Shown here piece by piece: positions 601 to 24,449 of a stretch of DNA of 64,000 bases. The position numbers and the translations under genes were made by a program. The DNA comes from Takakia lepidozioides (taxonomy: Eukaryota > Plantae > Bryophyta): contig CM060733.1 of NCBI GenBank assembly GCA_030704615.1, forward strand, positions 20,832,001 through 20,896,000, given 5' to 3'. Position 1 is the first letter of the stretch. Every line of letters starts with the position of its first letter. Under the pieces are notes generated by a model. It did no database searches. It had not been told where the DNA came from and saw only the letters and a program-made list of their open reading frames with translations.

Positions 601-659
601 TTTTCTCGGTTTCCTGATCTCTCCTTCTCACTCCCTCTCTCCCCCTCTCTCTCCCTCTG

Positions 660-2105
660 TTACCTGGGTCTATGGAATTGTTATCCCGACTTCCATATTT
701 TTTGTGCTTAAAATCTGGGTTGCAGGGAAAACCGGATGAATTTCATCCGGGTTTCATCCGTTTTACCTTGGCACATATCTGATTTTTCATTACTGCCTAC
801 GATTTTTCAGTATAGCCTACCTTGATTTCATCCAGCCTATACCATAGCTGTGATGTGTTGAACCTTGGTGTAATTTCCCGATTTTTCTCATCCTACCTTG
901 ATGGAAATTGGAATCTGTCCGTCGGGTTCAAGGCTATGTTGGATGAAATTCATCCAGACAGTGGATGACTGTTGTGGCAAGACAAGGTAAGGTCCCTGCG
1001 CAACCCTATTTCTGCCTCTTGCGTTGAAGGATCGCGCAATGGCGGCATGGAGGAGGAGAAGGTGCTCGAGCTGCAGTTACGTTGAGTTGCGGCTCCTTGG
1101 GTTGTTTAAAGACTATATGAATGCCGCCCCTATGGATTCATTAAGGAGACGGCGGTTCTTTTGAGGTGAGTGAAGGCACTGTCTCATTTGTCTGCTTTTT
1201 TGTTGCACAAGGGAACAAAGGCAGTGATGGCGGAGGTACCACCTGCCTGCTTGTGAAGTTTCCTTAGGAGCCCTCCTCTGGATCTTTGATGAATGGCGGC
1301 GTCTTGGTAAAACAAAGAAGTCTCTCTCTCCCTCCCTTTATAAACCCTACCTTATGAGACAAAGCTCTTTTTTCTTGTGCTTGGCAAGACTTTGCTTTGG
1401 TTAAGGTAGCAGTGTTGTGGTGTTGGTGGAGACCTCCCTGCATGGTTGGGCTTGTGGAGAGATGGCGACCATCCCCCAAACAGTTAAAAAGGTTTTTTTT
1501 TTTTTTTTGTTTGTTTGTCTTGCTTCCCTACTTTCTTTGGCATTCTCTGTGATTAGATTCAAGTGTATTTGACCTCGATAGCAAGTGTGGAAGCCTGCTA
1601 CTCACCTCGTGCATCCTCACTAACTCACAATGCGTTGTGGTTGTTTTTGGGACGGGCATAGGTGAGGGCTTCCACTTAATATGCTGATTGCCAAGTGCTG
1701 CAGGGTACCATGAGGATTACAGAGGAGTGAAGATGGCGGCTGGCTGTGGATTCATCTTGAAATCTGAAAAACTAAACTACTCTATGTTTTTCATGATCCT
1801 ACCTCTATGTTTGATCTATGAAGGACATTATAGTGCTACTTGTGGTGGGTAATCCTTTCCAGATTGGTGGAGGGCCCCTGTTTTGCAATGATGGCTAAGA
1901 CTGCCTTGCCATGCCTTGCCTTGCCCCCAACCTGTCAGGTTAAGCATAAAGGCACTACAATGTATTGTTTACGGCAACCCTTTGGGTATCTTCCCGTGCA
2001 TTGTTTAAACCCTGCAATGGTGGCTGAGTTATGGTGGTTTGTGTGGGACACATACATCAGTTTTTAGGCCCTGATTTGCTTTGTCTCCGGTCTGTTAGGG
2101 TAAAC

Positions 2106-2107
<2 letters not shown>
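660..2107 (+). mobile_element. Unclassified modular repeat, subtype B copy 1, left part (split by the LINE; continues at 13782-14886)
   Basis: Long similarity to 19020-20400 (e.g. 1200-1810 vs 19650-20250); TTCATCC/GGATGAA palindrome array at 730-970; structured motif at 1583-1677. Confidence 0.8.

Positions 2108-2164
<57 letters not shown>
2108..2164. repeat. (GA)n microsatellite, read as the (TC)n 3' tail of the minus-strand LINE
   Basis: Pure GA run lying between the LINE 3' UTR and the left copy of the candidate TSD. Confidence 0.85.
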
Positions 2165-2167
<3 letters not shown>

Positions 2168-2321
2168 CTCCGGCCGAGGCCGGCGTAACTAAGAGCCACT
2201 TCGCCTTGCGGCTACTGCCCCATTTCGGGGGTGGGCCCTATAACAAAAAAGTGTCCAAGGGGACACCAGGTGACCGCTAAGAATAGAGGGGGCGAGGGTA
2301 CCCCTGGGTATCCTGGTGGGC

Positions 2322-3216
2322 CTAAGGTGCGTTTGAAGTGTCGGATTCCAGTTGGCGTTTGTTGGTGATAATAGCTGTGAATGAATGGAGTGTCGTGAGA
2401 TGGATTTCTTTGAAACATTTGTGGATGGGAAGAATGGGAATTTGGAAGTTATCGTGTATGTCCGTGATACTGGCGTTATGAATGCCACCTCGAGTGCCGG
2501 CTGTGATGACAGTTAACGGGCCGGTTTTCCAGCCACGCCTTCGGAGTGCAAGGATAAGCGGGGCATATTTTTTACGTTTTTCTAAGATTGAATCGTTTGG
2601 ATAACGATCATGGCAAAATTTGAATTCAATGAAATGGATGGTGAGTTGTGGGGATGGTGAGGTGGGGGGTAAAGTATTGATAGGTAAACCTTGGACAGAG
2701 TATGTCCGGGCAAAGTCGAGCGGGGCATGAGCATGGTGATTGGGTACATATGCATGGTAGTAGCCACGGTGGTACTGTGTGGTCGGGTGGCCGTCCCTGG
2801 TAGGTGCCTGCATTCATGAGCGAGAACCAACGGGTTTTAGCACGTTTTACAAAGAGCTTGTGGAAGTGCCAGACTGTTTGGTTATGACCCGTGATATGCA
2901 AGCCATGTATAACTGGGTGTGTACATTGGATGAGGAGATGTGGCCAAGTGTCACGAGCTTGGTGGGTGGTTGCACATAACGGGCAGTATGGGGATGGGAA
3001 CAGATGTGGCCAGAAGATGTGTTTGCGCTGGTGGCCCATGTATTGGGGATATCGGAATTTGAGTGTTTGTCGGATTTGTGCGTCGGTGGTGGCTTTGGTT
3101 AGCCAGAAATGATTGGAGAGTTTATGGTGCAGTACATTGGATCGAGTCCATTTTTGGATGTGTACTTTGGTATGGCTGATGGAGGTTGCCGCTTGTTTAT
3201 TTGCTTCTCTGGTCAA
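2322..3216 (-). pseudogene. LINE C-terminal CCHC zinc knuckle plus restriction-like (PD-(D/E)xK) endonuclease
   Basis: CPLC..DTWPHLLIQC..GHN, RLCPDIL, then after a frameshift IHFIEFKFCHDRYP..KRKKYAPLILAL..GW..VITAGTRGGI. Confidence 0.8.
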
Positions 3217-3339
3217 AGTGGTCAGGAGGTTTCGGATTGGTCTGGGTGCAGGGGGGTCCAGAACGGGGTGTATGAACCAGAATGGATGGGTGTGGGCAAT
3301 GTGAATAGGGTCGTTCGAGGGTTCAACTATGGGTTGGGA

Positions 3340-3735
3340 GGCGCCGAGTTGGGCGAGTAGGTCTGCTTCTTCATTACCATGGATGCCAATATGCGAATGG
3401 ACTTTGAGTATATGGACTGGGTGGCCTAGGGAGATGGCCCTCTGGACAATAGTGGCAATGAGGTTGCGGTCGGGGTGATGATGATGGGCAAAGGGGTGGG
3501 AGATGTGGTTGCGAATGAGGAATAGTGAGGTAAGGCTATCGGTGAAGATGTAGTGTGGGGGGGGGAGGTATCAAGTAAAGAGAGGGCATCATGAATGGCC
3601 ATGAGTTCAGCCCGGAGGATGGTGGCAGGACCAGGGAGCCTGAGGGCAACGCCTTGACTGGTGCCGACGTGATAGATTCCATATCCTGCGTTGGGTTTGG
3701 TGAGGGATCTGTCAGTATAATGTGAATTGGCTAGT
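3340..3735 (-). pseudogene. LINE RNase H domain (frameshifted)
   Basis: HYTD(R)S..GYGIYH..TILRAELMAIHDAL, FTDSLTSL and KVHSHIGIHGNEEAD read across frames. Confidence 0.85.
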
Positions 3736-4841
3736 GGGTATTTGGGGATAGTGTTTTGGTGATATATTGCAGGGATTGGGGGTAGAGGTGTTGTTGGCAC
3801 GACCTGGGAAGGGCGTGGTGTCGCAATGTTCCAAGCTTTATTGGTTTTGATCCGGGACAATATGGTGGGTGTATGGGTGTGGGAGAGGATGGTTGGATAA
3901 TGGATGGTGGCCTTTGTTTTATGAGTGATGGTGAGCAATTGTTCGAGCTGAGAAAAGAAAGATGGCGGTATAGCTGTATGCCGGGGTTTTTGGATGTGTA
4001 GAAGCAGGGTTAGGGTGGGTTCCTTCCGTTTGAGATATTTGGGAAAATGAGGGGTATGAAAATACTTAAGCTGGTTTGGGTCAATTGTGGCGAGTAGATT
4101 GACCCATTCTGGGAGTTGTAGAAGAGGATGAGAGATATTAGGAGTGTTTTGTTGTGTGAGGATGAGGATTGTGGATACAGTAGGAGAGGAGTGCGCAACA
4201 AGTTTTGCCCATTGAAGAGCTTTGTGGGAAGGAGAACCAGGTGGAGGGTGGGCAAGGCCCCGACCTTCCCAGGTGTGCTGAGTGGTTGTACCAGTGGCTC
4301 CAAAGATACAGTCTCTGTGGTGCGGGCTAGAGAATGTGGGCAATGCCATAGGGCATGTCAGTGGGTTGGAGTAATATGAGTGAGTAAGCTGGAATGAATT
4401 GATAAGTAAGGAGAGAATATCTTGGGGTATAGTATGGTGCGCACATGTTGTTTCCAATTTAGTAAGGGACTGTGGTTTCTTGGGGGGAGTGTCTTTGAGG
4501 TAGCGATCAATCAGCCAATATAATTCGGTAGCAAAGTCTTGTTTCGGGGGTTGTAGCGATTGTGGGGATGAGGTAGTAGTAGAGTATTTTTCCCATAGCC
4601 ACGTTAGTCTTGTATTGGGGATGAGGCCAACGAAGTGGCCATGTTGAGCGTAAATGTTGGAAAGGCGGGGGCCCATGTGGATTAGAGGTCGATCATGCTT
4701 GACATCTTTGTCAGAATTACATTCAGTTATGCAGATGTGCACGTTGGGGGCATAGAGTGGTTGGTGTATATATCTGTTATTTGTAGGTTGGGCGGGAGTG
4801 GTGTGTTGTTGGTGCATAAGTGTTAGATAGTTGGTGTTGGT

Positions 4842-5055
4842 TTATTTATGGAAGGTGGTGAGGAGGGCAAGATTGTGTTCGAGGTCACAATCGTCATGTA
4901 GACCGAAGAGGTCGTCTTCTATCTGCCATGTGTTGTCTGCGGAAGAGTACCCAGCCCATTGACAGTGATAGTATGTATCAATGCAGGTGGCTCCAAAGGC
5001 ATCAATGGACGTTTGGGTTTTAACTCCTAGTATAGCTTCAATGATGTAAGCATTG
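4842..5055 (-). pseudogene. Chromodomain within LINE ORF, between RT and RNase H
   Basis: YIIEAILG...YYHCQWAGYSSADNTWQIEDDL matches the chromodomain pattern Y-x-VE-x-I...Y-x-VKW-x-GY...NTWEPE..L. Confidence 0.75.
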
Positions 5056-6002
5056 TTATTTTCGTTGTATTGTGGTGAAGATGGGAGGGATGGTGCGGTG
5101 GTGAGGGGGGTCTGGGATCCTTGCCTAGTAGGTGAGGGATTGGATGGTGTATGCAAGTGGCGGATAGGTTCAGGGTGTTGTGTGTTAGTTACTTGAGAGG
5201 GGAAATCAAATTCTATGTCTGTTTGGGTATTGGTGGCATATGTTGTTTTGAGTGTTTAGTAGATGGAGGTAGTAGGGGTAGAACAGTATTGGGGGAGCAG
5301 GTCTTGAGCCGTATGCGGATAGTAGAGGCATGGGAGGTCACATTGTAGAGTGCAGGCGGTCGAGGGATGGCAGAAGAGGGTACGAAGATGATGTAGGTAG
5401 CGATTGGTTTTGGTCGTGGCTCGGGAGAATTTAAGAGTGAATTCGCTAGGTTTTAAAAGTCTAAGGCCAGTGGCGGTAGTAAGTTGGGTGAGGGTGGTGA
5501 TGTGTCGTTCTTTGAAATATGTGAGGATGAGGACCTTTTGTTTGGGATAAGAAATGTCAAATTGTGGTAGAGAAGGGCTTGTAAGCCATGTGCGTTCTAA
5601 GGATGATGAGGTATTAGGATAGTCAGGCAGATCAGTTTGTATGTTAATTTTCATTTGGCGCACGATGAGTAGTGTGCGTGCAGTGGGGGAGTGTAGGCAG
5701 GCTTGTGGGTGCATGGATGATAATGAGTATAGGCCATTGTATTTAGATGTAAGGTATTTGAGAAGTCCATGATGAATGATACCTAGACGCCCAGAATTGT
5801 TGAGTGCTTCTTTTAATTGGGTCCTAATGTGCGAGCATATGAGATGATTAATGGGCCCGTAGTGGTCCGTAGGTAGTTGTGTGAGGGCATTGGAGGTACT
5901 AGTTGGTAGACCACATACACGTTTTGTTAGCTGGATAATACTTTTATCAAGTTTTTTCATGTCTGATAAGGAGAAGGGTGTGGCGTGGAACGAGTATTGA
6001 AT

Positions 6003-7274
6003 TTATGTTTGTAGTACTGATTGAATAATTGATAGTTTTGGTCGAATGACAATTGGGGATTTGAGCAGAGCAATACTTTTGGTAGTGAGTTTGGATGATG
6101 TATATTCTTTTTTAATATGCCAAGTAAGGAAGGGAACGAGTTGTATGCCTAAGTAAGTGTATGGCTCGTCTAGTCCTAGGAAGGGGAAGTGTGTGTTTTG
6201 GTAGTGTATATAGAGTTTATAATGTAAGGCTATGGCAGTTTTGGTGAGCCGACTATGATGTGTGGCGGCTGTGATGACACACTTGTGTAAGCTGAGTTCC
6301 ATGCCTGACCATAGGTTGAATCTGAGTAGTTTATTAACTTGTCGGTTGAGGTGTTGTGGTTTATGTGCCAGGATGGCTAGGTCGTCTGCATATGCTGCAG
6401 CTGAGATGTCACTTAAGGAGGTTTTGTAGTAATAGCCAAGCTTGCCTTGAGCTAGCCATCGAAGTAGGGGTTCTAGGAAGATAATAAATAGGTAGGGGCT
6501 TAAGGTGTCACCCTGGATAGTTCCACGAAGGATGGGGATAGGCGGGGTGGAGCCATAGTATGTGCCAAAGTATGCAGTAGCTGTTTGTGTAGATGTTTCC
6601 TATTAGTTGGACGGCATCGGTGGGGTACCCAAGATCAAGCATGATAGCAAGTAATCTGGCATGGTCTAGGGAGCCGAAGGCATTTTTAAAATCGATATAT
6701 AGAAGATAGATGTCTTGCTTTGTAAGTTTAGCATCTTCAAGTGCGGAGAGAACATATTGTATTGTTGTGTGTACTACATGTAGCTCGGAATCCTTCTTGG
6801 GGGTCACTAAGAATTTGGTGTTGCTCGCCATATCTTGATAACATTGTGGTGAGCGTACTGGTGAATAGCTTGTATATGGTGTTGGCCAGTGCTATGGGTC
6901 TGTAATTACTGAGATTTGTAGGATCGCCTTTTTTGAAAAGTAGACTGGTCCGGCTGTGTTTCCAGGAATGTGGGATTCGTTTTAGTTTGTAACAGAGTTG
7001 AAAGAATTTAAAAAGGAGATAGTGAAGTTGAGGGTTTAATGCTTGAAGTATAGCATTGGGTATAAGATCGGGGCACGGGGCTTTAGATTTTGATAGTTTT
7101 TTTAGACGTGATTCATAAAGATCAATTGTGAATAGGTCTATGATGCGATCCATGGGGGATCCTCTATTGTCAATCGAGAAGCCATCTATATCATACCACG
7201 GATAGTGTTTAGTTTTACACATGCAATTTGGCAGAGTGGAGACGGGGATGTAAGCAGTTTGGAACTGCAGGTGT
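6003..7274 (-). pseudogene. LINE reverse transcriptase (frameshifted)
   Basis: KSKAPCPDLIPN, NYRPIALANTIYKLFT, QEGFR, YIDFKNAFGSLDH, QGDTLSPYLF, AYADDLAI, YTYLGIQL. Confidence 0.95.
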
Positions 7275-8089
7275 CACTACAACAGATCATGGCTTTAACA
7301 TCTGCCACATTTGCCCAGTCGTAGCATATATGTCTACAAAATGCAAGGGGGCAGTCCTGGATGCCAATTGTGACCACCAGAAGACGTATATGCCACTGTG
7401 TGCCTCCGCCACGTCAGGATCTGCGGTCAAACAAATTTGACCAAATAGATTGAGATAGTAGATACGACTACGAGTCATGGCCACAACTACACTATGATGA
7501 CATGGATATTGCAAAATATGCCTGCTAGTATTCACGACTGCACGTGGCGATCGTTGGTTGCCCAAGGAATGTCTATGTGGAAAATGCAAAGATAAATGGA
7601 TGAAATAGAACGAGGATGTGATTGCAAATTGACGACGTGTCTACATATCATTGCGCGCGTGGTTGAAATATTGTGGTGTATTGGATGCAAGTGCATCTAA
7701 CGGCTGCAAATGATACGACTTCGAGGGTGACATCGACTTACAGGTGATTTATTTTAAATTGTAAGCGGTTTCAATAACTTCACTAGCAACTCCACAATTA
7801 TATTTTAAATTCATATTATTTGAGATATATATTAGTAATTAAATAAAATATACAGTCGTTTTAACCGTGACTCATTTAATGACTATGAATATATATATAC
7901 AAATATATAAAGCTAAAAATACCTTTATATGACATAAAATATATAATCATTTTATATATTGTTAGGGTGCAATACGTTCAAAACATTCAAAAGATTGGCT
8001 CGAATTTAGGGTTGCTAGGTCGCAGAGAGTGCAGGGGACTTAGTGTTTTTTGCGGGCTGCGTCTTCCTAGTGCCAAAGCATCGCGATAG

Positions 8090-10135
8090 CACTCCTCCAT
8101 GGGTCAAGACACAAGGTCGAGGACAATGTGGTGAGGGCACCTTCTTCTTCGACCTATTTCAGCCTGTTTTGCCCTCTCATCAGACTCGGCCCTGCATTTG
8201 CAGCACGGAGCAGAGCTGGCATGAGTTTTTGAAAGATCCTTCACGCTGGTGGGACAACCGTAATCGGAAGGTGTGGCTTTTTCTCAATGTACGATGTGAA
8301 GAAGTTTGTCCATCCTGCAAATGTGCTCTCGGCTCCTGTTAGTACCATGATTTGGTATTCTTCCTGATGTTTACAAGGTTCTTGGGAGAGTCAGCTTGGT
8401 CTTAGCAGGTCGTGTTTCAATCTCTGCCCGCTCAGTTGCACCGTGGTGGTTCTCATGGACCAATCCGACATTATCTGACTACGGACACAAGCAACACACA
8501 CGAGGTCCTCTTGGTTTCATGGTCAGTCCAATCCTCCATGGGTCAAGACACAAGGTCGAGGACAATGTGGTGAGGGCACCTTCTTCTTCAACCTATTTCT
8601 GCCTGTTTTACCCTCTCATTAGACTCGGCCCGAGATGCATATTTAATTCTATAAGTTAGCTGGTTGGGTGGATTTGTGGTGGTTAGGAGTGACTTTGACA
8701 AGCTACTGCCGATGTGGCAGCAAGAATGTATCCAAAAACAGATAACATAGATGAGGAGAAGCTTGTTGGTGCATCGATGGTGGTTTTGGAGTGATTTTGA
8801 CATGTTGTTGTAGGTAGGGTTAGGGCGTCAGTGTCAGCTGCAGCTAGCTGCAGCAAGGCTGAGGATGTATTCACGATTTGTACACAGGCATGGATAGTTG
8901 AAGGAGTGTAGGGATAGATTGTGGTTCCAGATTCATCCAAGATTCCCGGATTTCAAGCTCTTCCCTATGGAGGATAGCTACAAGAAACAGATGGTCAACT
9001 AGCACTGGCACTGCTAGTGCAATATCAACTAGCACTGCTAATGAAGGCACCTTCTTCAACACATTTCAGCCTGTTTTTCTCTGTCATCAGAGTCGTCCCT
9101 CAATTTTCCATGTTGAATTCTGCAAGTTAGCTCCTTGATGGATCTCTGGTGGTTTTCGAGTGATTTTGACATGTTTTGGAGTGATTTTGACATGTGACAG
9201 GTTCATGGCTGGAGTTCTTCAGCTTGTTTTGCCCTCTCATCAGACTTGGCCCCGAGATGCATATTGAATTTTGTAAGTGAGCTCGTTGGGATGGATGTGT
9301 GGTGGCCGTTTAGAGTGACTTTGACAAGTTAATGCCGATGTGACTACAGGAAAGTGTCGAAAAACAGATAACAGAGATGAGGAGAAGCTTTGGGCAGACT
9401 TGGCCCTGACATGCATATTGAATTCTGTAAGTTAGCTCGTTGGATGGATCTCTGGTGGTTTGGGGTGACTTTGACAAGTCTCTACTGATGTGGCAGCAGG
9501 AAAGTATCTGCGTGGGTGGATGGTCAACTGGAAACAGCAGGGGCAGCAACACGATTGGTAGAACAAGGCATTGCTAATGACGGTACCTTCTTCAACACAT
9601 TTCACCCTTGTCGTGTTTCAATCTCTACCCGCTCAGTTGCACAGTGGTGGTTCTCACGGACCAATCCGACATTACCTGATTACAGACACAAGTAGCACAC
9701 ACAAGAGGTCCTCTTGGGTTCATGGTCAGTCAAATCCTCCATGGGTCATGACACAAGGACGAGGACAATGTGGTAAAGATACCTTCTTCTTCGACCTATT
9801 TCAGCTTGTTTTTCCCTCTCATCAGACTCAGCCCTGAATTTGCATATTAAATTCTGTAAGTTAGCTCGTTGGGTGGATTTGTGGTGGTTTGAAGTGACTT
9901 TCACAAGTTATTGCCGATATGGCAGCAGGAAAGTACCCAAAAACAGATAACAGAGATGAAGAGAAGCTTTGGAATGAACGCTTTTCCGACCTGGAGGAGC
10001 AGGGATGGAGTGTGGGTCCAGATTCATCCAAGAGGGCTAGATCTGAAGCTCCAGATTACCTATGATTCGATGTGGAAGGATAGGTACAAGAAACCTGCAT
10101 GGGTAGATGGTCAACTGGTAGAAGTGATGGATGGG
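8090..10135 (+). pseudogene. Scrambled, repeated exons encoding OSB-type PDF motifs and linkers
   Basis: SWHEFLKDPSRWWDNRNRK|GT; PDYRHK..EVL.W..GQSNPPWVKTQ; IHPRGLDLKLQITYDSMWKDRYKKPAWVDGQL. Confidence 0.75.
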
Positions 10136-10154
10136 ATGGAATAGCAATGGACAG

Positions 10155-10250
10155 GTGGGCGATGCATTTTGAAGATGGACCATGCACCACTGTGTTTGGG
10201 TTGTCAACTGTGTTGGAGCTCGTAACTACAAGTTCTTCCTTCTTTCTTTG
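10155..10250 (+). pseudogene. Captured exon of a DHHC protein S-acyltransferase
   Basis: After an AG acceptor: GRCILKMDH(frameshift)HCVWVVNCVGARNYKFFLL. Confidence 0.85.
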
Positions 10251-11559
10251 CTATTTTGTGATCATAATACTAGCATCAGCAGGCATTGCAGCCAAAACCA
10301 AGTTCGACATTTTCTCTTACTTTGATTCATGGCAGCGGATTACCTTTGATGGCATCACTCAAGGGTTTATGGTGTGTTCCACTTCCTTCTTTTGACCCTC
10401 CATATCTTTACCAGTGGCGCTCTTAGGCTATTCCTCATATTTTTCGAGGACATGCACTTGCCTGTGTTTCATGGCTGAAATGGGTAGCGGAATGAGTGAA
10501 TGACGCCTCTTTGCCATGAAAGTATCTGGTTGAGTTGAGTTTTTGCAAGATTGGTGAAGATCCTTACAGATGAAAGGTTTTTAGGGGAACCTAGGTGCAG
10601 AGTTCTTCATCTGTTTGCTGTGTTGAAGGAGGTGATGGTAGGAAAAGCATGTATAGCATGTATGCTCAGCACCTTGTACTGATTGATGCACTGAACTTGT
10701 GTGTGGGGGCTGGTTGGACAGTCCTTCGTACTATTCTGGACGTATCCTACCAAAATAATGGTCTTGGAAATTCTAGGTTATGTTGGTGGATGTCTGGCTC
10801 TGTTTTGCTGCATGTCTATACCTTTGTCATTGACAATACTTTGGCTTCTGAAGGAGTAAACTAGAGTAACTTCTTTAGCGAGACATGCATGTGTGATGAT
10901 CCTGGCCTACAGCTGTGCCCTTGACATTACTCAGATTTGCTTATGACATTGTTCATATTTTCTAGCGCTACTGAAGCTGCATGGATGAAGCTTCTTCAAC
11001 ACAGCCGATGGAGTCTTCATCATAGTATGGAAAATTGGAATCTTCAAAAGACAGCCCGGGAACATGAGTCATGCTAATTCCAGCAGTAGGTAGCAATGGG
11101 GAAAAGGAGGTCAAGGCATAAAATGGTGTGGCATTGGTTGCGGACAACACAACAACTATTGAGGTGCACCATGTGACAACCCTGTGTTAGGCCTCCTTCA
11201 TTCAGCCGAACAATTTCCATTTTATTGCAGACACTCGTTGTCCTTTTCAACCAATTTGTCACATTGTCTTTTTGGGGACACTGGTCATAAGTACTTGATC
11301 CAGGCTGTATGAGATAGCTAGACAAATTGAGCTGAGATATGGATCCGTGCTATCCAACCACACCGATAAAATTGAAGCTATAGTATGAGCTTCAGTTCAA
11401 GTATCCCATCAGTTTGTAAGGATCTCTCTGAGTGGTATTGACTGTTTGTAATTCAGCATCTCATGCCTGAGTTCCATCTTTTGTTAAATGTGGTCAGGCA
11501 TATGAAAAAAAAGGCTTCCACAGAGGCATTTCAGCAGATTCAGATACATATGTCAGTCT

Positions 11560-13049: not shown

Positions 13050-13700
13050 AACATGTATAGGTGGGATAGGTCGAAAGGGGATGATGGATGTTGGGATGGT
13101 GACTGAGACGGGATAATGGTCTGAGTTGCATAAACTATTAATGTGTACATGACTATTGAGGTATGAGGGGATGTCATTTTGTGTCTTGAAGTAGAAACCA
13201 TCAAGAAGACTGAGGGATGAGTAGTTAAGTCCACCTTGTCTGGAGTAATGGTGATCGGCCGGTATATAACTGAGGTGGTGTGAGTGAGTGAATTTTGCTC
13301 ATTCATGGTCAACAGGGGATGGATGTTTGTGAACACCATTGTATGTGTGGCCCATGAGGGCAATGTCCCTGTTGAAATCGCCTGCTAGGATGTAGTGTTG
13401 GGATTGGTTGGAGGGTTGTGTGAGTGTGTTAGAGATGGTGAGTAGGATATCAGGGATCAGGGGGAGATCTTCAACATGTGAGGGCATGTACAAGTGGATA
13501 AGGATAATGGGAGGGATAGCGGGGAGGTGTAGTTTGATGATTTGAAGGTGTGATCGGAGGGAGAGAGCAACAGGTATTTTGACGTGTGTTGAGTTTAGTT
13601 TCTTGTAATAGAATGATATGCGGAGGTGTAGAGTCTGTTAGATGGATAAGGCTTTGAATGCTGGTAGCAAGTGACCCTACATTCCAGGTGAGTATATTGA
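13050..13700 (-). pseudogene. LINE apurinic-type endonuclease (APE) domain remnant
   Basis: LYMPSH..., HYILAGDFNRDI and the NSDHYPVS motif (~13100-13127). Confidence 0.85.
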
Positions 13701-13781
13701 GAGCGTGTGTTTGCTAGGAGGAGGGGGCGTGTGGGGGACTGTTGGGTCTAGGGGGTGTTGGAGGTGGGTCATTGGTGTGGC

Positions 13782-14886
13782 TAGGGTAACATTTAGGTGC
13801 TGCAAGTTATAGTTTGCTGCAGCCCTTTGGGTACCTTCCCGGACAGTGTTTAACCCTACAATGATGGCTGAGAATATGGTGACTTGTGAGGGACACCCAC
13901 ATCAGTTTTTAGGCCCTGGCTTACTTGGCTTCAACTTGTTAATAAACTTGGCAATGATGGCAAAGACCATGGTGGTTCATGTGGGACACACACATCAGCT
14001 TGTAGCCTTTTTTTGCTTTGTCTCGAGCCTTTGAGGTTTAACATACAAGTGCTGACTATGATGGCTTGTGTGGGACACACACATCAGTTCTTAGGCCTTG
14101 TTTAAACCTTTCAATGATGGCTGAGAAGATGGTGACTTGTGTGGGACACACACATTAATTCTTAGGCCATGGTCTAACTGGCTTTCAGCTTGTTAATAAA
14201 CATGGCAATGATGGCAAAGATTATGGTGGCTTGTGTGGGACACACACATCAGTTTTTAGGCCCTGGTCTATTTGGCTTTCAGCTTGTTAATAAACCTGGC
14301 AATAATGGCAAAGATCATGATGGTTCGTGTGGGACACAAACGTCAGTTTGTGGGTCCTGTTTTGCTTTGTCTCCAACCTGTTAGATTAAACATACAGGTG
14401 CTGAATATGATGGCTTGTGTGGGACACACACATCAGTTTTTAGGCCCTGATTAACCTTACAATGATGGCAAAGATTATGATGGTTTGTGGGACACACACA
14501 TCAGTTTTTTGGCCGTGGTTTACTTGGCTTTCGTCTTGATAATAAACCTGGCAATGACGGCAAAGATTATGGTGGTTTATGTGGGACACACACATCAATA
14601 TGGCCAAGTGGCCAAGTGCCCACCATCCCACCCATACCTCTGAATGTATATCCTGATTATGACTGGTGTTCAATCAGTATTTTTACTTACGCTTTGGGTT
14701 ATGAAGATTATTGACATGAACACATTATTGTGCATGGAGGTAATTCTGGATTTTCCAGCTTGATGATTGATGGATGGTGCCACTGAAAAGTGGCTGATAT
14801 GTCTGATTATTCTTATTTTTCCTGACAACGACCCTAGGGGTCTTGTCCTTGTCTTGACATGACAAAAGTATCTTCCCTCTCCCTCT
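13782..14886 (+). mobile_element. Modular repeat subtype B copy 1, right part
   Basis: 14600-14886 matches 21030-21310; ends with the GACCCTAGGGGTC hairpin and TATCTTCCCTC. Confidence 0.8.
13850..14600 (+). repeat. Minisatellite of about 9 units of 70-95 bp
   Basis: Recurring ATGATGGC...GTGGGACACACACATCAGTTTTTAGGCC. Confidence 0.9.
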
Positions 14887-14889
14887 ATA

Positions 14890-16060
14890 ACTCTTTGGAT
14901 TTCATCTGGCCTTAACCTTTTTTATGCTGGTTATTTGGTTTTTCATCCCAATCTTTTTTCATCCAAATTTGGATGATATTATTGTAGGATGATGAAAATT
15001 ACTGTGCAGAAATCTTGGTTTATCATTTTTTCATCCAAATTGGATGAACTCCATGAATGATGGTGACCTATTTTAATCCAAGAGATAGTAATTTTACCAT
15101 CATTTATTATAAATGATGGCAGTTATTAAGCCTGAGCCTATACCCTAACCCTAAAAGTTACCTTTTTAATGGATGTCATCCATTGACAAATGCATCTCTT
15201 GCTAGAATACGATTTTTCATACCCCTTGGATGAGAAATCGGGGATCTGTGCCCTAAACAGGTCGACACCTTTCACAGCACATAACTTGTGCTTCAAGGAT
15301 CCTTGATGATGCGCCGTGTAAATCTGCTCTCCAGCTGCTGCATGGTACCATGATGGCTAGCTCTTGGGATGCGCATTGACGGTTATGCAGATCTATAGAT
15401 TACATATGGCTCTTTCACTTTGTATGAGCTCTTCTCTATCTGTGAACCCTTCTACTTTGATTGCGTTCTGTTGGAGACGATCTGTTGGACGCCATGGCGC
15501 AGGGCATACCGCAAACACTCAAGGTCTTTTGAGGTTACCGTTGCTTGAATTGTGATCTGTATTTTCTTTAGAATTCAGCACTAACATGGATAGCAACTGT
15601 GAAGACCTACCACTCACCTGATGCATCCTCACTAACACACATCTCTATGTGGTGGTTTTTGGGACGGGCACAAGTGAGGGTCTTCACCTGTCTTGATTTC
15701 TTGAAGCTTGCAGTTCCTATTCTTGCAAATGTGGGTGTTGCTGTTGCCTACTACTGAGCCTGTTGCTGCTTCAAAACTGCCACCATACGGATGCAAACCT
15801 ACTTCAACTTGGCTCCAATGAGGATCTACTTCTACTCCTTACCTTGTTTTTGGTTTCTTGCAACCATATCTACATGGCAGGAGGTAGGGCATACATGAGG
15901 CTTCATAGAAAGCAATCTACTGGTTCCTCTACTGCCCCTTTTCTTTCATGTTTCAACTCGGGTATAATGTAACAGCTGGTACCTTGGCTGCATTGAAATT
16001 CAGCTCTAGAAGGAAACCATTTGGCTGGTTATTAAGAGACTGTTATGCCTTAGTAGACAA
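14890..16060 (+). mobile_element. Modular repeat subtype C
   Basis: TTCATCC..GGATGA array at 14940-15240, CCCTAACCCTAA at ~15143, structured motif at 15599-15687; bounded by CT-rich runs. Confidence 0.6.
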
Positions 16061-16214
16061 CACCCCCTCTCACTCCCTCTCTCTGTCCATCTCTCTCCCC
16101 CTCTCCCTTTCCCCCCCCTCTCTCTCTCTCTCCTCTCTTTTGTGCTGCTCACAAAACAAAACAAACCACAGAGGGAAAGAGGGGGTAGAAAAAGTTAAAA
16201 AGAGAGAGGGAGAG

Positions 16215-18860
16215 AGTGGGAAGATATTCATGTCATGTCAAGACATGGACAAGACATGGACAAGACCCTACTAGGGTCATTGTCAATTAAAGACATAAAC
16301 AGCCCATAAACAGGGCACCGTCTAGTACTTCCATTATAGTCATGACTTCCCAATTGATTTCACCCAATCATTCATGAGACAACAGGGTGGGAGGGCGGGG
16401 TTTGTTTATGTACAGGTCATGACAACAAGACAAGCATATAAGCAAACATCTTGTGTACTGAAAAATCTGATTGCTGCAGCCTGTCATACCCTTTCCTGAC
16501 ATCATAATTACAACAACACATGCATTCTAGAGCAAAACATCTTGTGTATGTGAAGCCAACCTGCAATATTACAGATTCAAGACATGCCCTTTAAGCAAAC
16601 ATCTTGGGTATGACAAAATAATTTGCAGCTACCTTATTAGTATTACCCCAAGACATGCATCATGCAAGGCATCTTGGGCAAGTAAGAACAACCTGCCATA
16701 TTACAAATTCAAGATATGTACACACAAGCATCTTGATGGACCAGCCTGCAGTTTGGGCAAATTCCAAGCATGCAACCAAATAACCCTCTTGGGCATGACA
16801 AAGCATATTGCAGCCTCATTCTTTACCATTTGTAATTACCCCAAGACATGCATCATGCAAGGCCCCTTGGGTAGGTAAGAACAGCCTGCCATACTACAGA
16901 TTCAAGACATGTATACACAAGCATCTTGATGGACCAGCCTGCAGTTTTTCAGTTTCCAAACATGCAACCAAATAAACCTTTTAGGAATGACAAGACAGAT
17001 TGCAGCCTCATTCTATACCATTCATAATTTCCCCAAGACATGCATCCTGCCATATTACAGATTCAAGATATGGACACACAAACATCTTGAGTGCCCGGGA
17101 CCAAGCCTTCTTGGCCAAAAAATAATCCATACATTGCAGGTAACTGGCCTGATGGCAAGACAAGGCTAATAATCTTTGGCAAAGGTCCAGTAGAGCTTAC
17201 CAACACTGTTTTCCAGGAGGCTTATGCCAAGGTTTGCAAATAAACCTCACTATGCTCCATTCCACAACAGATTTAGGTCTGAAAGAGGCCTGTCAGTGCC
17301 TTATCAGGCTGCCATCTTAAAAATCAGGGCCTCCTCTTCCTTAGAACCTGACAGCCACTGAGGCCTTACCCATAAAACTCAACTCCTCTTTAAGGCCAAA
17401 ACAGTATCTAGCTTAATAATCCACAGGCACCGCTGTCATTACAAGAAAAGGTAAGGTCCAAATGTTGGGCTTCAAGAGACAGGCCTGCCAGGCCGAAATG
17501 CTCTATCAAAGGCAGCAAAACATAAGTCAAAAGTAAGCATGAGCATGCCAAACCAGGAGCAAGCGGGCCGAAATCGGGGCTGCAGGCAGCAGTCAGGTCA
17601 AGACACCATACACAATAGGTTCCCTTTGCCCACATCCATATCTGCAAGCTCAAGAGAATTCAAAGCAAGTAGGGATCCTTAGCTGGTCCCATCACAAGCC
17701 CCCACAAAAACCAACAGGTTAGTGAGGATTGTGGAACCCCAGGTGAATCACAGACCCCTACACTTGTCATCGACGTCAACTAAGAACCTCAAAAGCAAGA
17801 GAGAAAGACATAAAACAAAAAGAACCCTAATCACCAAAAGCACCTTGGGCGATTGAGGAAGAGAACTGTGCGCCATCACCACCAGCAAGCCACCTCAGCA
17901 AAGCAAAGGAGAAGTGAAGCATACAAGCACACTTGCTAGGTTTAAGAAGGGAGAGAGAAAGATACTTCCCCACACAAGCGCCGCTGCAAAAATTAAAAGC
18001 CAGAGGAGGGAAAGAGACGATGCATTCACAGCATTGTCTCCCGCCTGTAAGGAAAAACAAAGCGCCGCCATTGCCCATCTCCAGGAGATCGCCCAACACG
18101 GGTACGATACAGCAAACAGGGTAGCAGCAAAACGCAGATGCCATAACGCTCTTCCCGCAAGCTCAGAAGCACTGCTCGTGCTTCTGACGGCGGGAGAGAC
18201 ATCCTAGGGCTCTTGCCCGATTTTTCATCCGTGCAGGATGGTAAATCAACACCACATCCTTTAAAACCCGACGGATTTTATCCGTAGCTAGGTTAAACGG
18301 TAGGTTTTAGGGTAGGGGTTAGGGTTTCACACCTTAACTAACCATAATTAGGGGTAATCAATATCAGTCCAGGGCCATCAAAAGCTGTACACCTCAAAAA
18401 TTATTGAGTTCATCCGTTGGAAAAAAATCCAATAGTAGGATGAAAAAACAGGAAATAATATCCAAGGCTTGGTTTTCTATCCTCACAGGTAATTCCACAT
18501 CCCAAACATGCCTCATCCGGCACCGATGAAAAAGCAATGAAAGAGGAATGAAAAAATTAATATCGTGGTATTTTTCATCCGGTATGGATGGAAAAATAGG
18601 ATGCCAGTGGCAACCCCCATAGTGGTAATTCCTCATTCTCTGGTGACTCAGCCGGTGTGGATGAAAGTCAATAAAAGAGGAATGAAAAATCAGAGACTCA
18701 TCTTAGAGGTAATTCAGTGTCCACCCTGGTAGTTCATCCGATATGGATGAAAAATCATTATAGGATGGGTGGAAAAACTGCCAGAGTCCATCCGGTATGG
18801 ATGAAAACACAGGAAATTAACACTGAGAAAACCGGCCAATTCCAAGGATGGAGGGAGACA
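16215..18860 (-). mobile_element. Modular repeat subtype A, inverted copy
   Basis: Reverse-complement similarity to 22200-24440; internal ~190-bp degenerate tandem repeats at 16520-17090. Confidence 0.8.
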
Positions 18861-18864
18861 GAGG

Positions 18865-19010
18865 GAAAGAGGGGGCAACAAAGGAAAAGAAAAAAGAAAA
18901 AAGAAAATGGGGTGGGGGGGAATGACCGAGCAGCTACAGCTGCTGAGCAAAACCTGTTCAGTCACTCCCCCCACCATTTTTTATTTTTTATTTTTTATTT
19001 TGTCCTGATC
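18865..19010. repeat. Palindromic hub joining subtype A (minus) and subtype B (plus) head to head
   Basis: GGGGAATGACCGAGCAG...CTGTTCAGTCACTCCCC flanked by A-rich and T-rich arms. Confidence 0.7.
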
Positions 19011-19014
19011 TCTC

Positions 19015-21310
19015 CCTCTGGAAACTGGGATTATGGAATTGTTGTCCCGACTTCCATCTTTGAGGAAATTGAAAAAAATTGAAAAATTGGGTTGCAGGGA
19101 ATTTTGGATGTTTTTCATCCAAAATACAAAAAAAATAAATCCTAGTGAAATATTTCTTTACTAAAATACCTGTGAGTTGCAAAACTCCCGTCAGTTTCTA
19201 CTTTTTCAATCCAACCTGGATGAAAAAAGGACTTCATCTGACAGGACCTAAATACGGGGCAAGACAGGTATAAACCCCCGATGTTTTTCATCTAACCTAG
19301 ATGAAATACGGACTACATCCGTTGAGTGCAAGACAGGATGAAAGCACGATGTCTTTCATCTTCCGCGAATGAGAAACGGACAAAGTCCGTCGGGCGGACA
19401 GACTAGCAGATGTTTTTCATCCTGAGAAGGATGAATGACGGGCCAAACAGGGGAAAACCCTGCGCAACCCTAATGTCTCTCTTTTTGCGCTGCGAGAGCG
19501 CGCGCGATAACGGCTTGTGAGGAGCGATGGTGCTCGTGCTGTAGATACCTTGAGTGTTTATGGCTCATGTGAGCGCCGCCTAGGCGGGCTCTTTAAGGCG
19601 GTGGCTTAGAGATGAGGGAAGATTCACTGTCTCAGTTGTCTGTTTTTTTTGCTGCACAAGGGAACCGCGGCAGTGATGGCGGAGGTACCACCTGCATGCT
19701 TATGACGTTTCCCTAGGAGCCCTCCTCTGGATCTTTGATGAATGGCGGCGTCTTGGTAGAACAAGGAAGTCTCTCTTCCTCCCTTTATAAACCCTACCTT
19801 TTGAGACCAAGCTCTTTTTTCTTGTGTTTGGCAAGACTTTGCTTTGGTTAAGGTAGCAGTGTTGTGGTGTTGGCGGAGTCCTCCTTGCACGGTTAGGCTT
19901 GTGGAGAGATGACGACTCTCCCCTAGACAGTAAAAAAGGTTTTTTTTCTGTTTGTTTTGCTTCCCTGCATTCTTTGGCATTCTCTGTGCTTAGATTGAAG
20001 TGTATTTGACCTCGATAGCAAGTGTGGAAGCCTGTTACTCACCTCGTGCATCCTCACTAACTCACAATGCGTTGTGGTTGTTTTTGGGATGGGCACAGGT
20101 GAGGGCTTCCACTTAATATTCTGATGTCTAGGTGCTGCTGGATGCCAAGTGGGATTGCAGAGCAGGGGAAGGAATCGCTTGCCAGAGACTCATCTTAAAA
20201 TGTTGAAAAACTAAACTACTCTATGGTTTTTCTTGATCCTACCTCTTTCCTTCCTTGATTTTTGAAGAACAAGTGTAATGCTTTCTACGATGGGCTAGTT
20301 CGGCCCAACCAGTGGAAAACCTCTGTTATGTGGTGACAGCCTAATTTATGATGGCTTGTGTGAGAGACACACATCTGTTTTCCAGGCCCTAGTTTGCTTT
20401 GCTTACCTTATGGTAGATGGAAACAAAGTGAGAGGCTGCAAGGAAATGGTTGCTACAGCTACTCGGCTACCTCTGTTGGTAAAAGACCCATGTTATGTTC
20501 CAACCTAGATGGCTGCTTAGGCCAGGGTATGGTGAAGTTTCTGCCTGTGGCTATTCGGCTGACACTGAAATATGGCAGTAATATAAATGGTAACTGGTTT
20601 TTGAGGCAGCCAGGGTGGTCAAGTGGAAATACCCCCTGGACATGGTGTAATGACATGGTCAAATGTGGAATGATGTGAAGGATGTACTGACAGTATCATA
20701 TACTGTCACAGGATGTGTATGCAGTCCTTTATATTTACCTTGCTGTGTCATGAACTTTGATTTTCAGCTGTAGCAAGAAATAAAGGTATAGGGGTATTCT
20801 GGAAAACTTACCAGACATATCCACATCCCCTGTGGGGGCAAGCTGTACTGCACACTAGTCTAAACAAATACTGGCAAGGCAAGGTATTTAAATATGTGAT
20901 ATCCAAGTGTTCATTTCTTTTTTTAGAAAACCCTCCATGACACCCATGGGGTTTTAGTAAGTATGCTTGGATTACAACTTGCAAACAGTAAATCTGTATG
21001 ATTATGTGACCTGCACCATATCAAGGCCAAAATATGGCCAGGTACCCGCCATCCCACCCAGACCTCTGTAAGTGTATCACGATCTTGACTGGTGGTCAAT
21101 CAACATCAGTGGCATACCCTTTGGGTTATGAATAATACTGACATGAACACATTACTGTGCATGGATGTAATTATGGATTTTCTAAGCTTGATGATTGATG
21201 GATGGTGCCACTGTTAAGTGGCTGATATGTCTATTTATTCTTTCATGACAACGACCCTAGGGGTCCTGTCTTTGTCTTGACATGACAAAAAGTATCTTCC
21301 CTCTCTCCCT
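19015..21310 (+). mobile_element. Modular repeat subtype B copy 2 (uninterrupted)
   Basis: Colinear with 660-2107 plus 13782-14886. Confidence 0.8.
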
Positions 21311-21314
21311 CTCT

Positions 21315-22075
21315 TTTAAGCTCCCGACGAGATGAGCTTAAGGTCAGATGGTGGGGTCAGCTGCAGCATATGTCCAACACCAGATATCCTAAGTCAATCT
21401 ACTCTATATCTTGGAAACAAGACCGCCCTGTCAAACAGGCTAAGCCCTGGCAGAAGAGAGTAGAAGAGATTCTCAAGGATCTGAATCTGGACCCGCAAGT
21501 CTTGACCTTGCTGGATAAATCTGACTTGGAGAATGTAGTGTCCAAAGCCATGTCTGTTACTAGAAAATTGTCCGATGAAAATGAAGTTAGGAAGAAAACT
21601 TCCCTGAACCTGTTTCCAGTCTGTGACATGGGGGAGGACATCATGGATGCGCTCAAAGGGTCTATTCCACTCTTGACACCAGACTGAAATTTATACTCAG
21701 GGCAGGAATCCTACTTTTGAACAGTAAACAGAAGCAGAGAGGAAAGGGAGAGTGCAATTGCCCGTTGTGTGGGCAACCTGAAGACAGTATTCATTTTCTA
21801 ATGTCTAGGGTTCTCTCACCAAAGAGATGCTCTCTTCAAAACTATCAAGGGAATTGTGCATGTACCTCTATTTACCAACTTTGAAAGTCTCGAGGCTGAG
21901 CCAAAAGCCCAGCCCCTTCTGAGGCCTAGTTTTTGGGCAAATCACACACAACAGATTGATGCTTTGTGTGAAGGGTTTCTAGAGGATAACTGGAAAACCC
22001 GGATTAATTCTATATGTGAAGGTAAGTCTTACTACCAACATCAGCCCCTGACAGAGGTAGGATCTGTCATTTTTG
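21315..22075 (+). pseudogene. 3' fragment of a non-LTR retrotransposon ORF (post-RT region with CCHC-like knuckle), copy 1
   Basis: RWWGQLQHMSNTRYPK..W, LKFILRAG..CNCPLCGQPEDSIHFL; near-identical to 24450-25050. Confidence 0.7.
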
Positions 22076-22083
22076 TTTCCCCA

Positions 22084-22175
22084 AGAGAGGGGGCAACAAA
22101 GAAAAAAAGAGGTGACTGAGCAGCAGCAGCTACTCCCCCCCCCCCACCTTCTTTTCTTTTCTTTGTTGCCCCCTG
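22084..22175. repeat. Palindromic hub, copy 3
   Basis: AGGGGGCAACAAAG ... CTTTGTTGCCCCCT inverted arms around GTGACTGAGCAG. Confidence 0.7.
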
Positions 22176-22199
22176 ATGTCTCCCTCTCACTCTCTCCCT

Positions 22200-24440
22200 C
22201 TGTCTCTGTCTCTCCTGGGAACCGGCAAGTTGTTATCAGTGTTGATTTCCTGTTTTTTCACCCATACCGGATGAAGTTTTGACAGAGTTTCATCCATCCT
22301 CTATTGGTTTTTCATCCATACCGGATGAGCCACCAGGATGGACACTGAATTACCGTTATGATGGTTTTATTTTATTTTTTCATTCCTCTTTTATTGACTC
22401 TCATCCATACCGGATGAGTCACCAATGAATGAAAAATTACCTCTATGAAGGTTGCCAACAACATCCTGTTTTTCATCCATACCGGTTGAAAAGCTACCAG
22501 GATTATAATTTTTCATTCCTCTTTCATTGACTTTATTATCCATACCGGGTGGTCTGATAATGAATGATGAATTACCTAGGTGGAGGTAAACTGCTGCCAC
22601 AGATGATATTCCCTACTTTTCATCTTGACAATGGATGACGAGTATAGATGATTATGTCCTGGAATTGATCTTAACTACCCCTAATTATGATTAATTACGG
22701 GGTAAAACCCTAACCCCTACCCTAAAACCTATTTTTAACTCTGCTACGGATGAAATCCGTCAGGGTAGAAGAATGTTTTTTACTGTTTTTCATCCACGGA
22801 TGAAAAATCGAGCAGAAAAACCCTATGTTGTCTCTCCCGCTGTCAGAAGCACGCGATGTGCTTCTGAGCTCGAGGGGAGAGTGTTATGGCGGACGTGCTT
22901 TTGTGGCTGCCCTGTTTGTGGTGTCATACCCGTGCTGGGCGAGCGCTTGGGGATGCACGAAGGCGGCGCCTTGTCTCTCTAGCAGTTGGAAACACTGCTG
23001 TAAATGCAATGGCATCTTCCCTCCTCTGGCTTTTAATTTTAGTAGTGGCATTTGTGCTGGGAAGTCTCTCTCCTTCCCTTATATTGCCTTGCGAGTTTGT
23101 CTGCTTTGCTTCATTGCTCATGTGCTTTGTGGAGGCGGCTTGCTGCGGGTGGTGATGGCGCATAACCCTCTTCCCCAATCGCTGAAGGTGCCTTTGGAGT
23201 TTAGGGATCCTTGTGTTTTTATCTTCTTCTCTTGCTTTTGAGATTCTTAGTTGACATCGATGACAAGTGTGAGGGTCTGTGATTCACCTAGGGTTCCACA
23301 ATCCTCACTAATCCGTTGATTTTGTGGGGGCTTGTGATGAGACCAAGTGAGGATCCTCACCTACTTTGAAATTTCTTGAGCATGCAGTTGGGGATATGGG
23401 CTGAGGAGACCTGTAAGTTATCGCGCCTTGAAGTGGTGGCTGCCTGCAGCCCCAAATTCAACCCGACTACTCCTGGTTTGCCATGCTACAGCCTATGTTT
23501 TGGCTTTTGTTGTTCTGCTGTCGATGGGGCAGCTCGACCTGTCTGGCTTGTCTCCAGAGGCCTGCATATAGACCATACCCTATCTTTTGATCCTTGATAG
23601 CAGGGCCTGTGGATTAATGAGCTAGGTTGTAATTTCTTTGGGCCATAGAGGATCTGGTTTTATGGGGGCTGCCTCGGCGGGTTTGGGACTCTAAGGACGT
23701 GGTGGCCTTGAATCTTATGGCGGCAGCATGATAAGGCACCGACCTGCTCCTTTTCGGGCTTGTTTCTGGTGTGTGATGGATCATAGTGAGGTGTTCTTTG
23801 CAAGCTTATGCATGGACCTCTTGAAGGATGAAGATGGTAAGCTGTAATGGAATCCTACCTATAGTCTTGGCCTTATCATGACATCAGGCCTATGACCTGC
23901 AATCTGAGTTTTCAAGATGCTTGTGTGTACATGTCTTGAATTTGCAATATGACAGGCTGATCTCACATTCCCTTGACGCCTTATATGATTACACGTCTTG
24001 GGGTGATTACAAATGGTATGGAATCTGTTTTATCATGCCCAAGTGGATTGCTTGGAGGCATGTCCTGAGTCTGAAATATTGCAGGTTGGTCCTTATGCTT
24101 TGCTTGATGCATGACCCTATGTAATAAAAAGCTGATAAGGTAAGGTGCTGCAATCTGTGATTATGACCTTGTCATGACACCAGGCTCGTGACCTGCAATT
24201 TAATGATCCATTGGCCAAGATGGCCAGATCTCGAGTGTTCAAGATGCTTGTATCCCCTACATGAACAAACCCCGCTCTCCCACCCTGTTTTATCATGACT
24301 GATTGGGTGATGTCAATTCATGGGAAGCTATGACAAGAATGGAAATGTTAGATGGTGCCCTGTTTTGGGCTCTTTAATTGACAATGACCCTAGTGGGTCT
24401 TGTCCGTGTCTTTACATGACATGAATATCTTCCCTCCCTT
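22200..24440 (+). mobile_element. Modular repeat subtype A, forward copy
   Basis: Palindrome array at 22255-22810, AAACCCTAACCCCTACCCTAAA at ~22705, structured motif at 23269-23360, terminal GACCCTAGTGGGTC hairpin. Confidence 0.8.
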
Positions 24441-24449
24441 CTGTGCTGC

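Follow-up and report, generated by a model that had tools for sequence, protein, structure and literature searches.

A stretch of 64,000 nucleotides (nt) from the moss Takakia lepidozioides (assembly GCA_030704615.1, contig CM060733.1, positions 20,832,001 to 20,896,000; hereafter called the window and numbered from its first letter) harbors five copies of a hairpin of approximately 90 nt, each located within a conserved island. The structure is real, selected and of RNA type, and it is unlisted in Rfam. We tentatively propose, giving it slightly less than an even chance, that this hairpin regulates splicing as part of the leader of a retroelement-like unit that is itself non-coding.

An original prediction, made from the letters alone, had described a covarying stem-loop in five copies, and all five were found again at the positions given there. 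In every copy the hairpin exceeds shuffled sequence in stability, with z-scores from -2.2 to -5.4. The outer, basal helix (helix 1) comprises 9 base pairs (bp), which in a five-way alignment are 100% paired in 5/5 copies; furthermore, both sides have changed at 6/9 pairs. The outer stem thus changes its letters and keeps its pairing, as had been predicted. Upon sliding the partner strand by 1-3 columns, pairing dropped to 36-53% and at most two pairs showed changes on both sides; among 500 shuffles, none matched the observed pairing or covariation score. RNAalifold, applied to the five-way alignment, recovered helix 1 as well. The helix opens at its base with an invariant GU, and its arms are 71-75 bp apart.

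Helix 1 is followed by a 5-nt bulge and by the 7 bp of helix 2, in which (C/U)UCACCU pairs with A(G/A)GUGAG. This second stem, reported before as degraded in the inverted copy A2, is indeed present and 88.6% paired, with zero covariation. The predicted swap in the inner hairpin, from CACAA with UUGUG in subtype B to CACAU with AUGUG in subtype C, was confirmed, but it is not common to the A copies, where the apical fold differs. Strict sequence invariance is confined to 11 nt, which are apical and partly unpaired: ATCCTCACTAA, already described as invariant, is identical in 5/5 copies, and its five exact occurrences in the window all lie within the hairpins.

Conservation was found to exceed the hairpin, and the extent given earlier has to be corrected. 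A cross-subtype alignment revealed an island of ~135-150 nt, with an upstream part of ~30 nt (UUGACnUCGAUrrCAAGU) and a downstream part of ~25-28 nt terminating in UGCAG. Copies B1 and B2 are 93% identical across the island, against 82% for the flanks (p=7e-4); the corresponding values for A1 and A2 are 86% and 71% (p=5e-5). Between subtypes, identity in the island amounts to 76%, and blastn and tblastx detect the island alone. Conservation across subtypes sets in just past a UUAG and ends at UGCAG. The compensatory changes in helix 1, together with an island conserved above its flanks within subtypes, support the core of the original prediction, namely a selected cis-acting structure.

It had also been remarked in passing that CACTAAC resembles a branch point. 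This aside probably points to the answer: taken as a whole, the island resembles a series of spliceosomal signals enclosed in a hairpin. The upper hairpin carries an ACUAAY branch-point motif in 5/5 copies (CACUAAC, in A1 CACUAAU). A donor-like AAG^GU (the caret marks the candidate junction) is found in 5/5 copies ~95 to 125 nt upstream of the hairpin, and the distance from there to the AG in helix 2 is 151-170 nt in all of them. The first AG follows the branch-point A after 36-39 nt in 4/5 copies, with an extra AG at +30 in A1. Helix 2 contains, opposite the invariant UCACCU, the sequence (C/U)A(G/A)^GUGAGG in 4/5 copies, and the acceptor is UAG or CAG in B1, B2 and A2. A UGCAG is located at +76 to +80 from the branch-point A in 4/5 copies, ~25-28 nt past the hairpin, and is preceded by YUGAY at a distance of ~20 nt. 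The GU at the base of helix 1 constitutes a second candidate donor, 73-79 nt before the AG of helix 2.

The leaders of the units share a short conserved stretch, ATGGCG...AAG^GU. TATA-like boxes, where seen, lie ~230-250 nt upstream of the hairpin copy; for copy C, no such box was found. For comparison, the window also contains a class III peroxidase gene with at least two introns, whose donors are CAG^GUGGGU and CAG^GUACGC and in which UACUAAU occurs at -27 and CUGAC at -34. Judged by these real introns, strong ACUAAY branch sites fit the genome.

According to the reading that we favor, the five elements would be copies of one RNA-structure island of ~140 nt in the 5' leader of a retroelement-like transcription unit. 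The hairpin would represent the folded 3' part, with branch point and acceptor, of an intron of 151-170 nt that begins at AAG^GU, and it would extend into the next exon. The interval from AAG^GU to UUAG in copy C is 48 nt, too short for a plant intron, which makes a single intron of 151-170 nt the most canonical choice. Alternative junctions would use the GU at the helix base as donor, giving an intron of 73-79 nt, or GUGAGG as donor, and we are undecided between these and the intron of 151-170 nt. With acceptor and GUGAGG buried in the stem, the ratio of spliced to unspliced RNA would be set by the fold. Because the acceptor, GUGAGG and the GU at the helix base all lie inside helices, the fold probably limits splicing rather than aiding it. 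An intron-carrying retroelement would need unspliced RNA as template and maybe spliced RNA for expression; a balance would be required because only unspliced RNA passes the intron, and any internal promoter, to new copies. Sense transcription, the junctions used, the inhibitory direction and the retroelement nature of the units are what we infer.

Retroelements that keep an intron have to prevent the host from splicing all their RNA. If our proposal is true, a hairpin over branch point, acceptor and donor-like site, with pairing maintained in three diverged subfamilies, would be a concrete and testable device for splicing control; clear covariation of this kind would also be a rarity among plant introns. 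Annotation is concerned too, as this family of non-coding moss units could be misread as genes or as a novel ribozyme.

Several observations weigh against a splice-regulating hairpin. The upstream donor is weak past AAG^GU, at positions +3 to +6, and the AG-free tract is G/U-rich, not pyrimidine-rich. In C and A1 the acceptor is a poor AAG, shifted by 1 base relative to B, and GUGAGG is at least equally good as a donor. The antisense strand carries a better donor-like sequence, AG^GUGA(G/A)U, in 5/5 copies, a consequence of the palindromic nature of helix 2. Comparing the folding energies of the two orientations gives a mixed picture across the copies: the two A copies reach -36.5 and -37.8 kcal/mol in sense versus -26.4 and -28.6 kcal/mol in antisense orientation, and in the B and C copies pairing is about equal on both strands. 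The original prediction had taken G-T pairs to fix the RNA strand. This argument proved weak, as helices 1 and 2 contain four G-U cells on the sense strand versus three C-A cells, which correspond to G-U on the opposite strand. It is the context, not the pairing, that suggests the strand, and the wobble evidence is mixed.

Moreover, the evidence comes from three to four independent lineages in one 22-kb cluster. Two pattern scans of metagenome contigs yielded 0 matches and 4 chance matches, respectively, one pattern scan of viral contigs returned 25 chance matches with 0 fitting the covariance model, and a word search using the neighboring open reading frame (ORF) gave no further copies. Two exact look-ups of proteins from the window found them absent from the assembly index. 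Within the 64 kb, an nhmmer search and a covariance model with its filters disabled both failed to detect a sixth hairpin copy; a literature search for the invariant 11-mer returned primers only. As far as sequence searches can tell, the hairpin island is without relatives in the collections searched.

The hairpin could instead serve as a cis-acting signal of a retroelement RNA in packaging, dimerisation or recognition by reverse transcriptase, the splice-like motifs being coincidental or protein-binding. A covarying helix around an invariant single-stranded core would suit such a signal, as would the 10-nt palindrome GAGGAUCCUC in the A-type 3' arm and the resemblance of the units to transposable-element subfamilies, which are arranged head-to-tail and head-to-head and contain telomere-like repeats. 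We nevertheless consider this explanation unlikely: the element is internal and promoter-proximal, whereas the recognition stems of long and short interspersed nuclear elements (LINEs and SINEs) lie at the 3' end, and the units have no reverse transcriptase of their own in the window. It also leaves unexplained why conservation stops at AG dinucleotides and why five splice-type signals are kept.

An autonomous small structured RNA of a new class has a poor chance, be it a self-cleaving ribozyme, an Sm-class RNA resembling small nuclear RNAs (snRNAs), or a decoy combining a 5'-splice-site mimic with the U1-like UCACCU. The fold is strong and conserved and matches no known family. The U-run with GG after it (GAUUUUGUGG or GUUUUUGGG) is reminiscent of an Sm site and ACUCACCU of the U1 5' end, both as resemblances only. 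No promoter is located directly 5' of the island, however, the TATA-like box being ~230-250 nt away, and the identity between subtypes is low for an snRNA-type gene. Both the apical fold and the alignment columns occupied by the U-run differ between A and B/C, and no pseudoknot or known catalytic core is visible. A likeness to U1 or U2 was rejected as well: stretches resembling GAUCAAGUGUAG and ACUCACCU and a U-run followed by Gs were noticed by eye, but no covariance model backs them. Slimmer still is the chance of a functional RNA of an undescribed class, that is, a decoy whose branch-site motif and paired 5'-splice-site/U1-like duplex would capture or time the binding of SF1, U1 and U2, or a new self-cleaving motif; either way, its role would go beyond that of a passively folded intron terminus.

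The hairpin is probably not a new ribozyme. An Rfam scan covering hammerhead, hepatitis delta virus (HDV)-like and twister ribozymes, U1, U2, small nucleolar RNAs (snoRNAs) and microRNA (miRNA) precursors gave no match at gathering score in the whole window and, in the units, nothing on the island at expect values (E) up to 10. Two islands were also scanned alone; one gave nothing, and that of A1 gave only two chance-level C/D snoRNA matches, with E of 6.7 and 9.9. This agrees with the earlier statement that hammerhead, HDV and twister consensus are not matched. ARAGORN identified no tRNA-like gene. The specific functions suggested at that time, a ribozyme, a template or priming signal for reverse transcriptase and a replication origin, found no support; the Rfam ribozymes are unmatched and the element is internal to the repeat.

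We also examined an explanation at the DNA level, in which a protein dimer binds the two arms as an inverted repeat, or a hairpin is extruded in single-stranded DNA during transposition or replication, and the arms co-evolve to fit the same protein. Palindromes of two kinds in the units, described below, would be in line with this idea, as would the nearly equal pairing of B and C on both strands. But arms of 9 bp at 71-75 bp from each other are far apart for dimer half-sites, conservation peaks in ATCCTCACTAA, which is asymmetric and not a palindrome, the element lies inside the repeat and not at its terminus, and the A copies fold far better as sense RNA. We therefore judge a DNA-level element improbable. 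That the island is a transposon terminus was rejected, as homology continues on both sides in the A pair and in the B pair.

There is little to be said for a small-RNA precursor, either a tailed mirtron or a hairpin source of small interfering RNA, which would be released from the intron and silence related elements. The layout is that of a 3'-tailed mirtron, with a hairpin starting at GU and a UGCAG 25-28 nt past its end; however, a stem of 9 bp and 7 bp around a 5-nt bulge is both short and irregular, invariance covers only 11 nt instead of a 21-nt duplex, the arms, from which the small RNAs would come, show the least sequence conservation, and no miRNA family is matched. For the same irregular stem and the lack of a conserved duplex of ~21 nt, a miRNA precursor was rejected. 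The same fate befell a snoRNA, for which the boxes are missing, a ribosome-shunt leader, as the end of the short ORF lies at a variable distance from the stem, and a tRNA-type primer-binding site at TGGCG, a motif present three times per unit. Finally, a short protein-coding exon in the frame LTSIASVEACYSPRASSLTH... has next to no chance and is already largely refuted. No stop interrupts this frame within the motif in B2, C and A2, and subtypes differ by indels of 6 nt and 3 nt, multiples of three. However, B1 and A1 (2/5 copies) contain in-frame stops, and A1 has also lost 1 nt. B2 and C differ by 8/6/8 substitutions at the three codon positions, the stem arms would undergo radical residue changes (E/K/R/G), tblastx gives similar scores to all six frames, and the open frames end 5 to 27 codons past the hairpin 3' end.

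The hairpins are carried by five non-coding units of 2-3 kb, which are located within the first 25 kb of the window and belong to subfamilies A, B and C (Table 1). One architecture is common to all five: a palindrome termed P, CATCC-N(3-8)-GGATG palindromes, C-strand telomere-like repeats, a TATA-like box (except in C, as stated above), the ATGGCG...AAG^GU stretch, the island, a non-coding body and finally a segment with a broken ORF remnant. Units B2 and A1 are arranged head-to-tail, whereas A2 and B2 stand head-to-head and diverge from a common palindrome P (18845-19020). On both sides of unit C, the end of this last segment, termed X, is found in inverted orientation (14840-14896 and 16255-16199). 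Palindrome P is found at the 5' side of each unit and consists of a purine-rich arm (AGAGGGGGCAACAAAG...), a center AGTGACTGAGCAGC...GCTGCTCAGT and a pyrimidine-rich arm. It draws many chance-level matches to miRNA covariance models because it forms a long hairpin. Palindromes of the second kind, CATCC-N(3-8)-GGATG, number 10, against an expectation of 0.67, and are restricted to the upstream portions of the five units, often within TTTTTCATCC...GGATGAAAAA; they could be protein-binding sites. C-strand telomere-like repeats of the CCCTAA type occur in sense orientation 450-585 nt upstream of the hairpin, assuming the moss telomere repeat type; units A1, A2 and C have 2-3 of them, B1 and B2 one AACCCTA each. 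Unit B contains a tandem array of a ~94-nt repeat (core ...TGTGTGGGACACACACATCAGTTTTTAGGCCC...), of which B2 keeps only a 60-nt remnant.

Table 1. Hairpin islands, repeat units and other features of the window (positions in the window; the caret marks a candidate splice junction)
Feature	Position	Strand	Details
Island, copy B1	1557-1703	+	hairpin 1587-1675; branch-point-like A 1623; AG^GUGAGG 1660-1667; UGCAG end 1703
Island, copy B2	19994-20140	+	hairpin 20024-20112; branch-point-like A 20060; AG^GUGAGG 20097-20104; UGCAG mutated, next GCAG end 20160
Island, copy C	15572-15713	+	hairpin 15599-15687; branch-point-like A 15635; AAG^UGAGG 15672-15679; UGCAG end 15713
Island, copy A1	23251-23387	+	hairpin 23269-23360; branch-point-like A 23311 (ACUAAU); AAG^UGAGG 23345-23352; UGCAG end 23387
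Island, copy A2 (inverted)	17642-17779	-	hairpin 17761-17669; branch-point-like A 17719; helix 2 and GUGAGG degraded (CAG^CUAAGG); UGCAG end 17642
AAG^GU donors	1492 (B1), 19939 (B2), 15524 (C), 23188 (A1), 17843 (A2)	+; A2 -	donor-like, upstream of hairpin
Leader, B1	1339-1556	+	TATA-like box 1339; ATGGCG 1462; AAG^GU 1492; then U-rich stretch
TATA-like boxes, other copies	19786 (B2), 23080 (A1), 17946 (A2)
Unit A1	22083-25056	+	P 22083-22215; CATCC-N5-GGATG 22313, 22402; C-strand telomere-like repeat 22706-22732
Unit A1, 3' part		+	TATA-like box, hairpin island, non-coding body, X segment 24371-25056 with broken ORF remnant
Unit A2	16198-19020	-	inverted relative to A1, with 73% identity to it; truncation inside X at 16198
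Unit B2	18845-22083	+	P; CATCC..GGATG 19418; AACCCTA 19466; TATA-like box; island
Unit B2, 3' part		+	94-nt repeat remnant 20346-20404; X 21035-22083, ORF remnant ending AAG^GTAAGT
Unit B1, left part	505-2108	+	P 505-660; CATCC..GGATG 951; AACCCTA 1002; leader; island; tandem array start 1937-2108
Unit B1, right part	13781-14896		tandem array, then X 14609-14896; resumes past LINE-like insertion
Unit C segment	14897-16197	+	CATCC..GGATG 14960, 15032; telomere-like repeat 15136-15153; island; CT-rich P-like palindrome 16060-16197
Palindrome P	505-660, 16060-16216, 18845-19020, 22083-22215, 25051-25140		5' side of each unit
CATCC..GGATG palindromes	951, 14960, 15032, 18226-18803, 19418, 22313, 22402
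Tandem array, ~94-nt unit	1937-2108, 13783-14600		unit B
X ORF remnant, broken	21370-22027, 24500-25056		common to units A and B
LINE-like insertion	2109-13780	-	11.7 kb; plus-strand (AG)n 2111-2165; weak RVT_1 match 6737-7222 (-); sub-threshold PCIF1_WW match 3426-4817
Repeated 27-mer	8157-8183, 9064-9090, 9799-9825 (minus), 40303-40328 (plus)		three copies inside LINE-like element
Class III peroxidase gene	34048-35820	+	introns 34591-34946 and 35113-35353

Segment X of units A and B contains a broken ORF remnant with the motif CNCPLCG...H...C, for which no Pfam match was obtained. A large protein search returned four weak relatives of this remnant, one of which (P0003) is a true homologue: an intact protein of 250 amino acids with 55% identity, encoded on a Logan contig of another organism (L026 4788-5540). 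It has no Pfam domain and no reverse transcriptase, and its contig lacks the hairpin. The CPLCG...H...C motif resembles the C-terminal ORF of a LINE-like element in the window (E 0.02); judged by this similarity, X more probably represents the tail of a LINE ORF2 than the beginning of a protein of Penelope type.

This LINE-like element is inserted inside the 94-nt tandem array and splits unit B1. It is flanked by a target-site duplication of ~12 bp, TAGGGTAA(A)CAT, and its tail is a long (CT)n run. The PCIF1_WW match of the insertion is cap methyltransferase-like. Its weak RVT_1 match is the sole reverse-transcriptase match in the window, where a search of the units found no Penelope-type reverse transcriptase. 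Hammerheads were not detected in the units either, neither by Rfam at E up to 10 nor as a CUGANGA...GAAA pattern match. A repeated 27-mer, CTGATGAGAGGGCAAAACAGGCTGAAA, with copies mainly in the LINE-like element, fits a loose hammerhead-core pattern, with no convincing helix II and no Rfam match.

The known systems closest to the proposed leader intron are Penelope-like elements. Penelope of Drosophila virilis and the Chlamys retroelements carry a 5'-untranslated region intron in the terminal repeat (pLTR), and introns are kept on retrotransposition (PMC8557442). Elements of this group form partial tandems and inverted pairs, and their endonuclease-less clades carry reverse-complement telomeric repeats (PMC8557442). 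The predicted intron of the moss units can be likened to the promoter-proximal leader intron of Penelope-like elements, including Chlamys-3 of Chlamydomonas. The head-to-tail and head-to-head layout of the units, with boundaries and terminal repeats that are provisional, may correspond to the partial tandem and inverted arrangement that forms pseudo-LTRs, and C-strand telomere-like repeats are present in their sense strand as in the endonuclease-less clades. In contrast to Penelope-like elements, the units are non-coding and lack a Penelope-type reverse transcriptase or hammerhead in the window. The literature searched describes no conserved covarying hairpin over branch point and acceptor for Penelope-like elements. 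The island would work like a Penelope-type leader intron, and we do not file it in that family.

Yeast introns of the RP51B type contain stems between the surroundings of the 5' splice site and the branch region, whose pairing is preserved by compensation and which influence spliceosome assembly in cis. In the yeast stems the splice sites remain free and splicing is helped, whereas in the moss hairpin the GU at the helix base, the AG and GUGAGG lie inside helices, and masking is more likely. Structures occluding splice sites are known from retroviruses, e.g. the hairpin at the major splice donor of human immunodeficiency virus 1 (HIV-1), a leader hairpin in a system that needs both spliced and unspliced RNA. 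Host and element are unrelated and there is no homology in sequence or fold; furthermore, the moss hairpin also encloses branch point and acceptor.

Recursive splice sites combine juxtaposed acceptor and donor, YAG^GUAAGU, and serve very long animal introns. The moss AG^GUGAGG past a branch point and an AG-free tract has the signature of such a ratchet point, but the segments concerned measure 75-170 nt and 40 nt, and 40 nt is below the length that a plant intron needs. Fungal and algal introner-like elements are multi-copy, of intron size and of unusually stable predicted structure, and they bring their own splice signals into unrelated host genes. The moss copies differ from these in that they share a homologous flanking leader; thus, a larger unit has been copied, not the intron alone.

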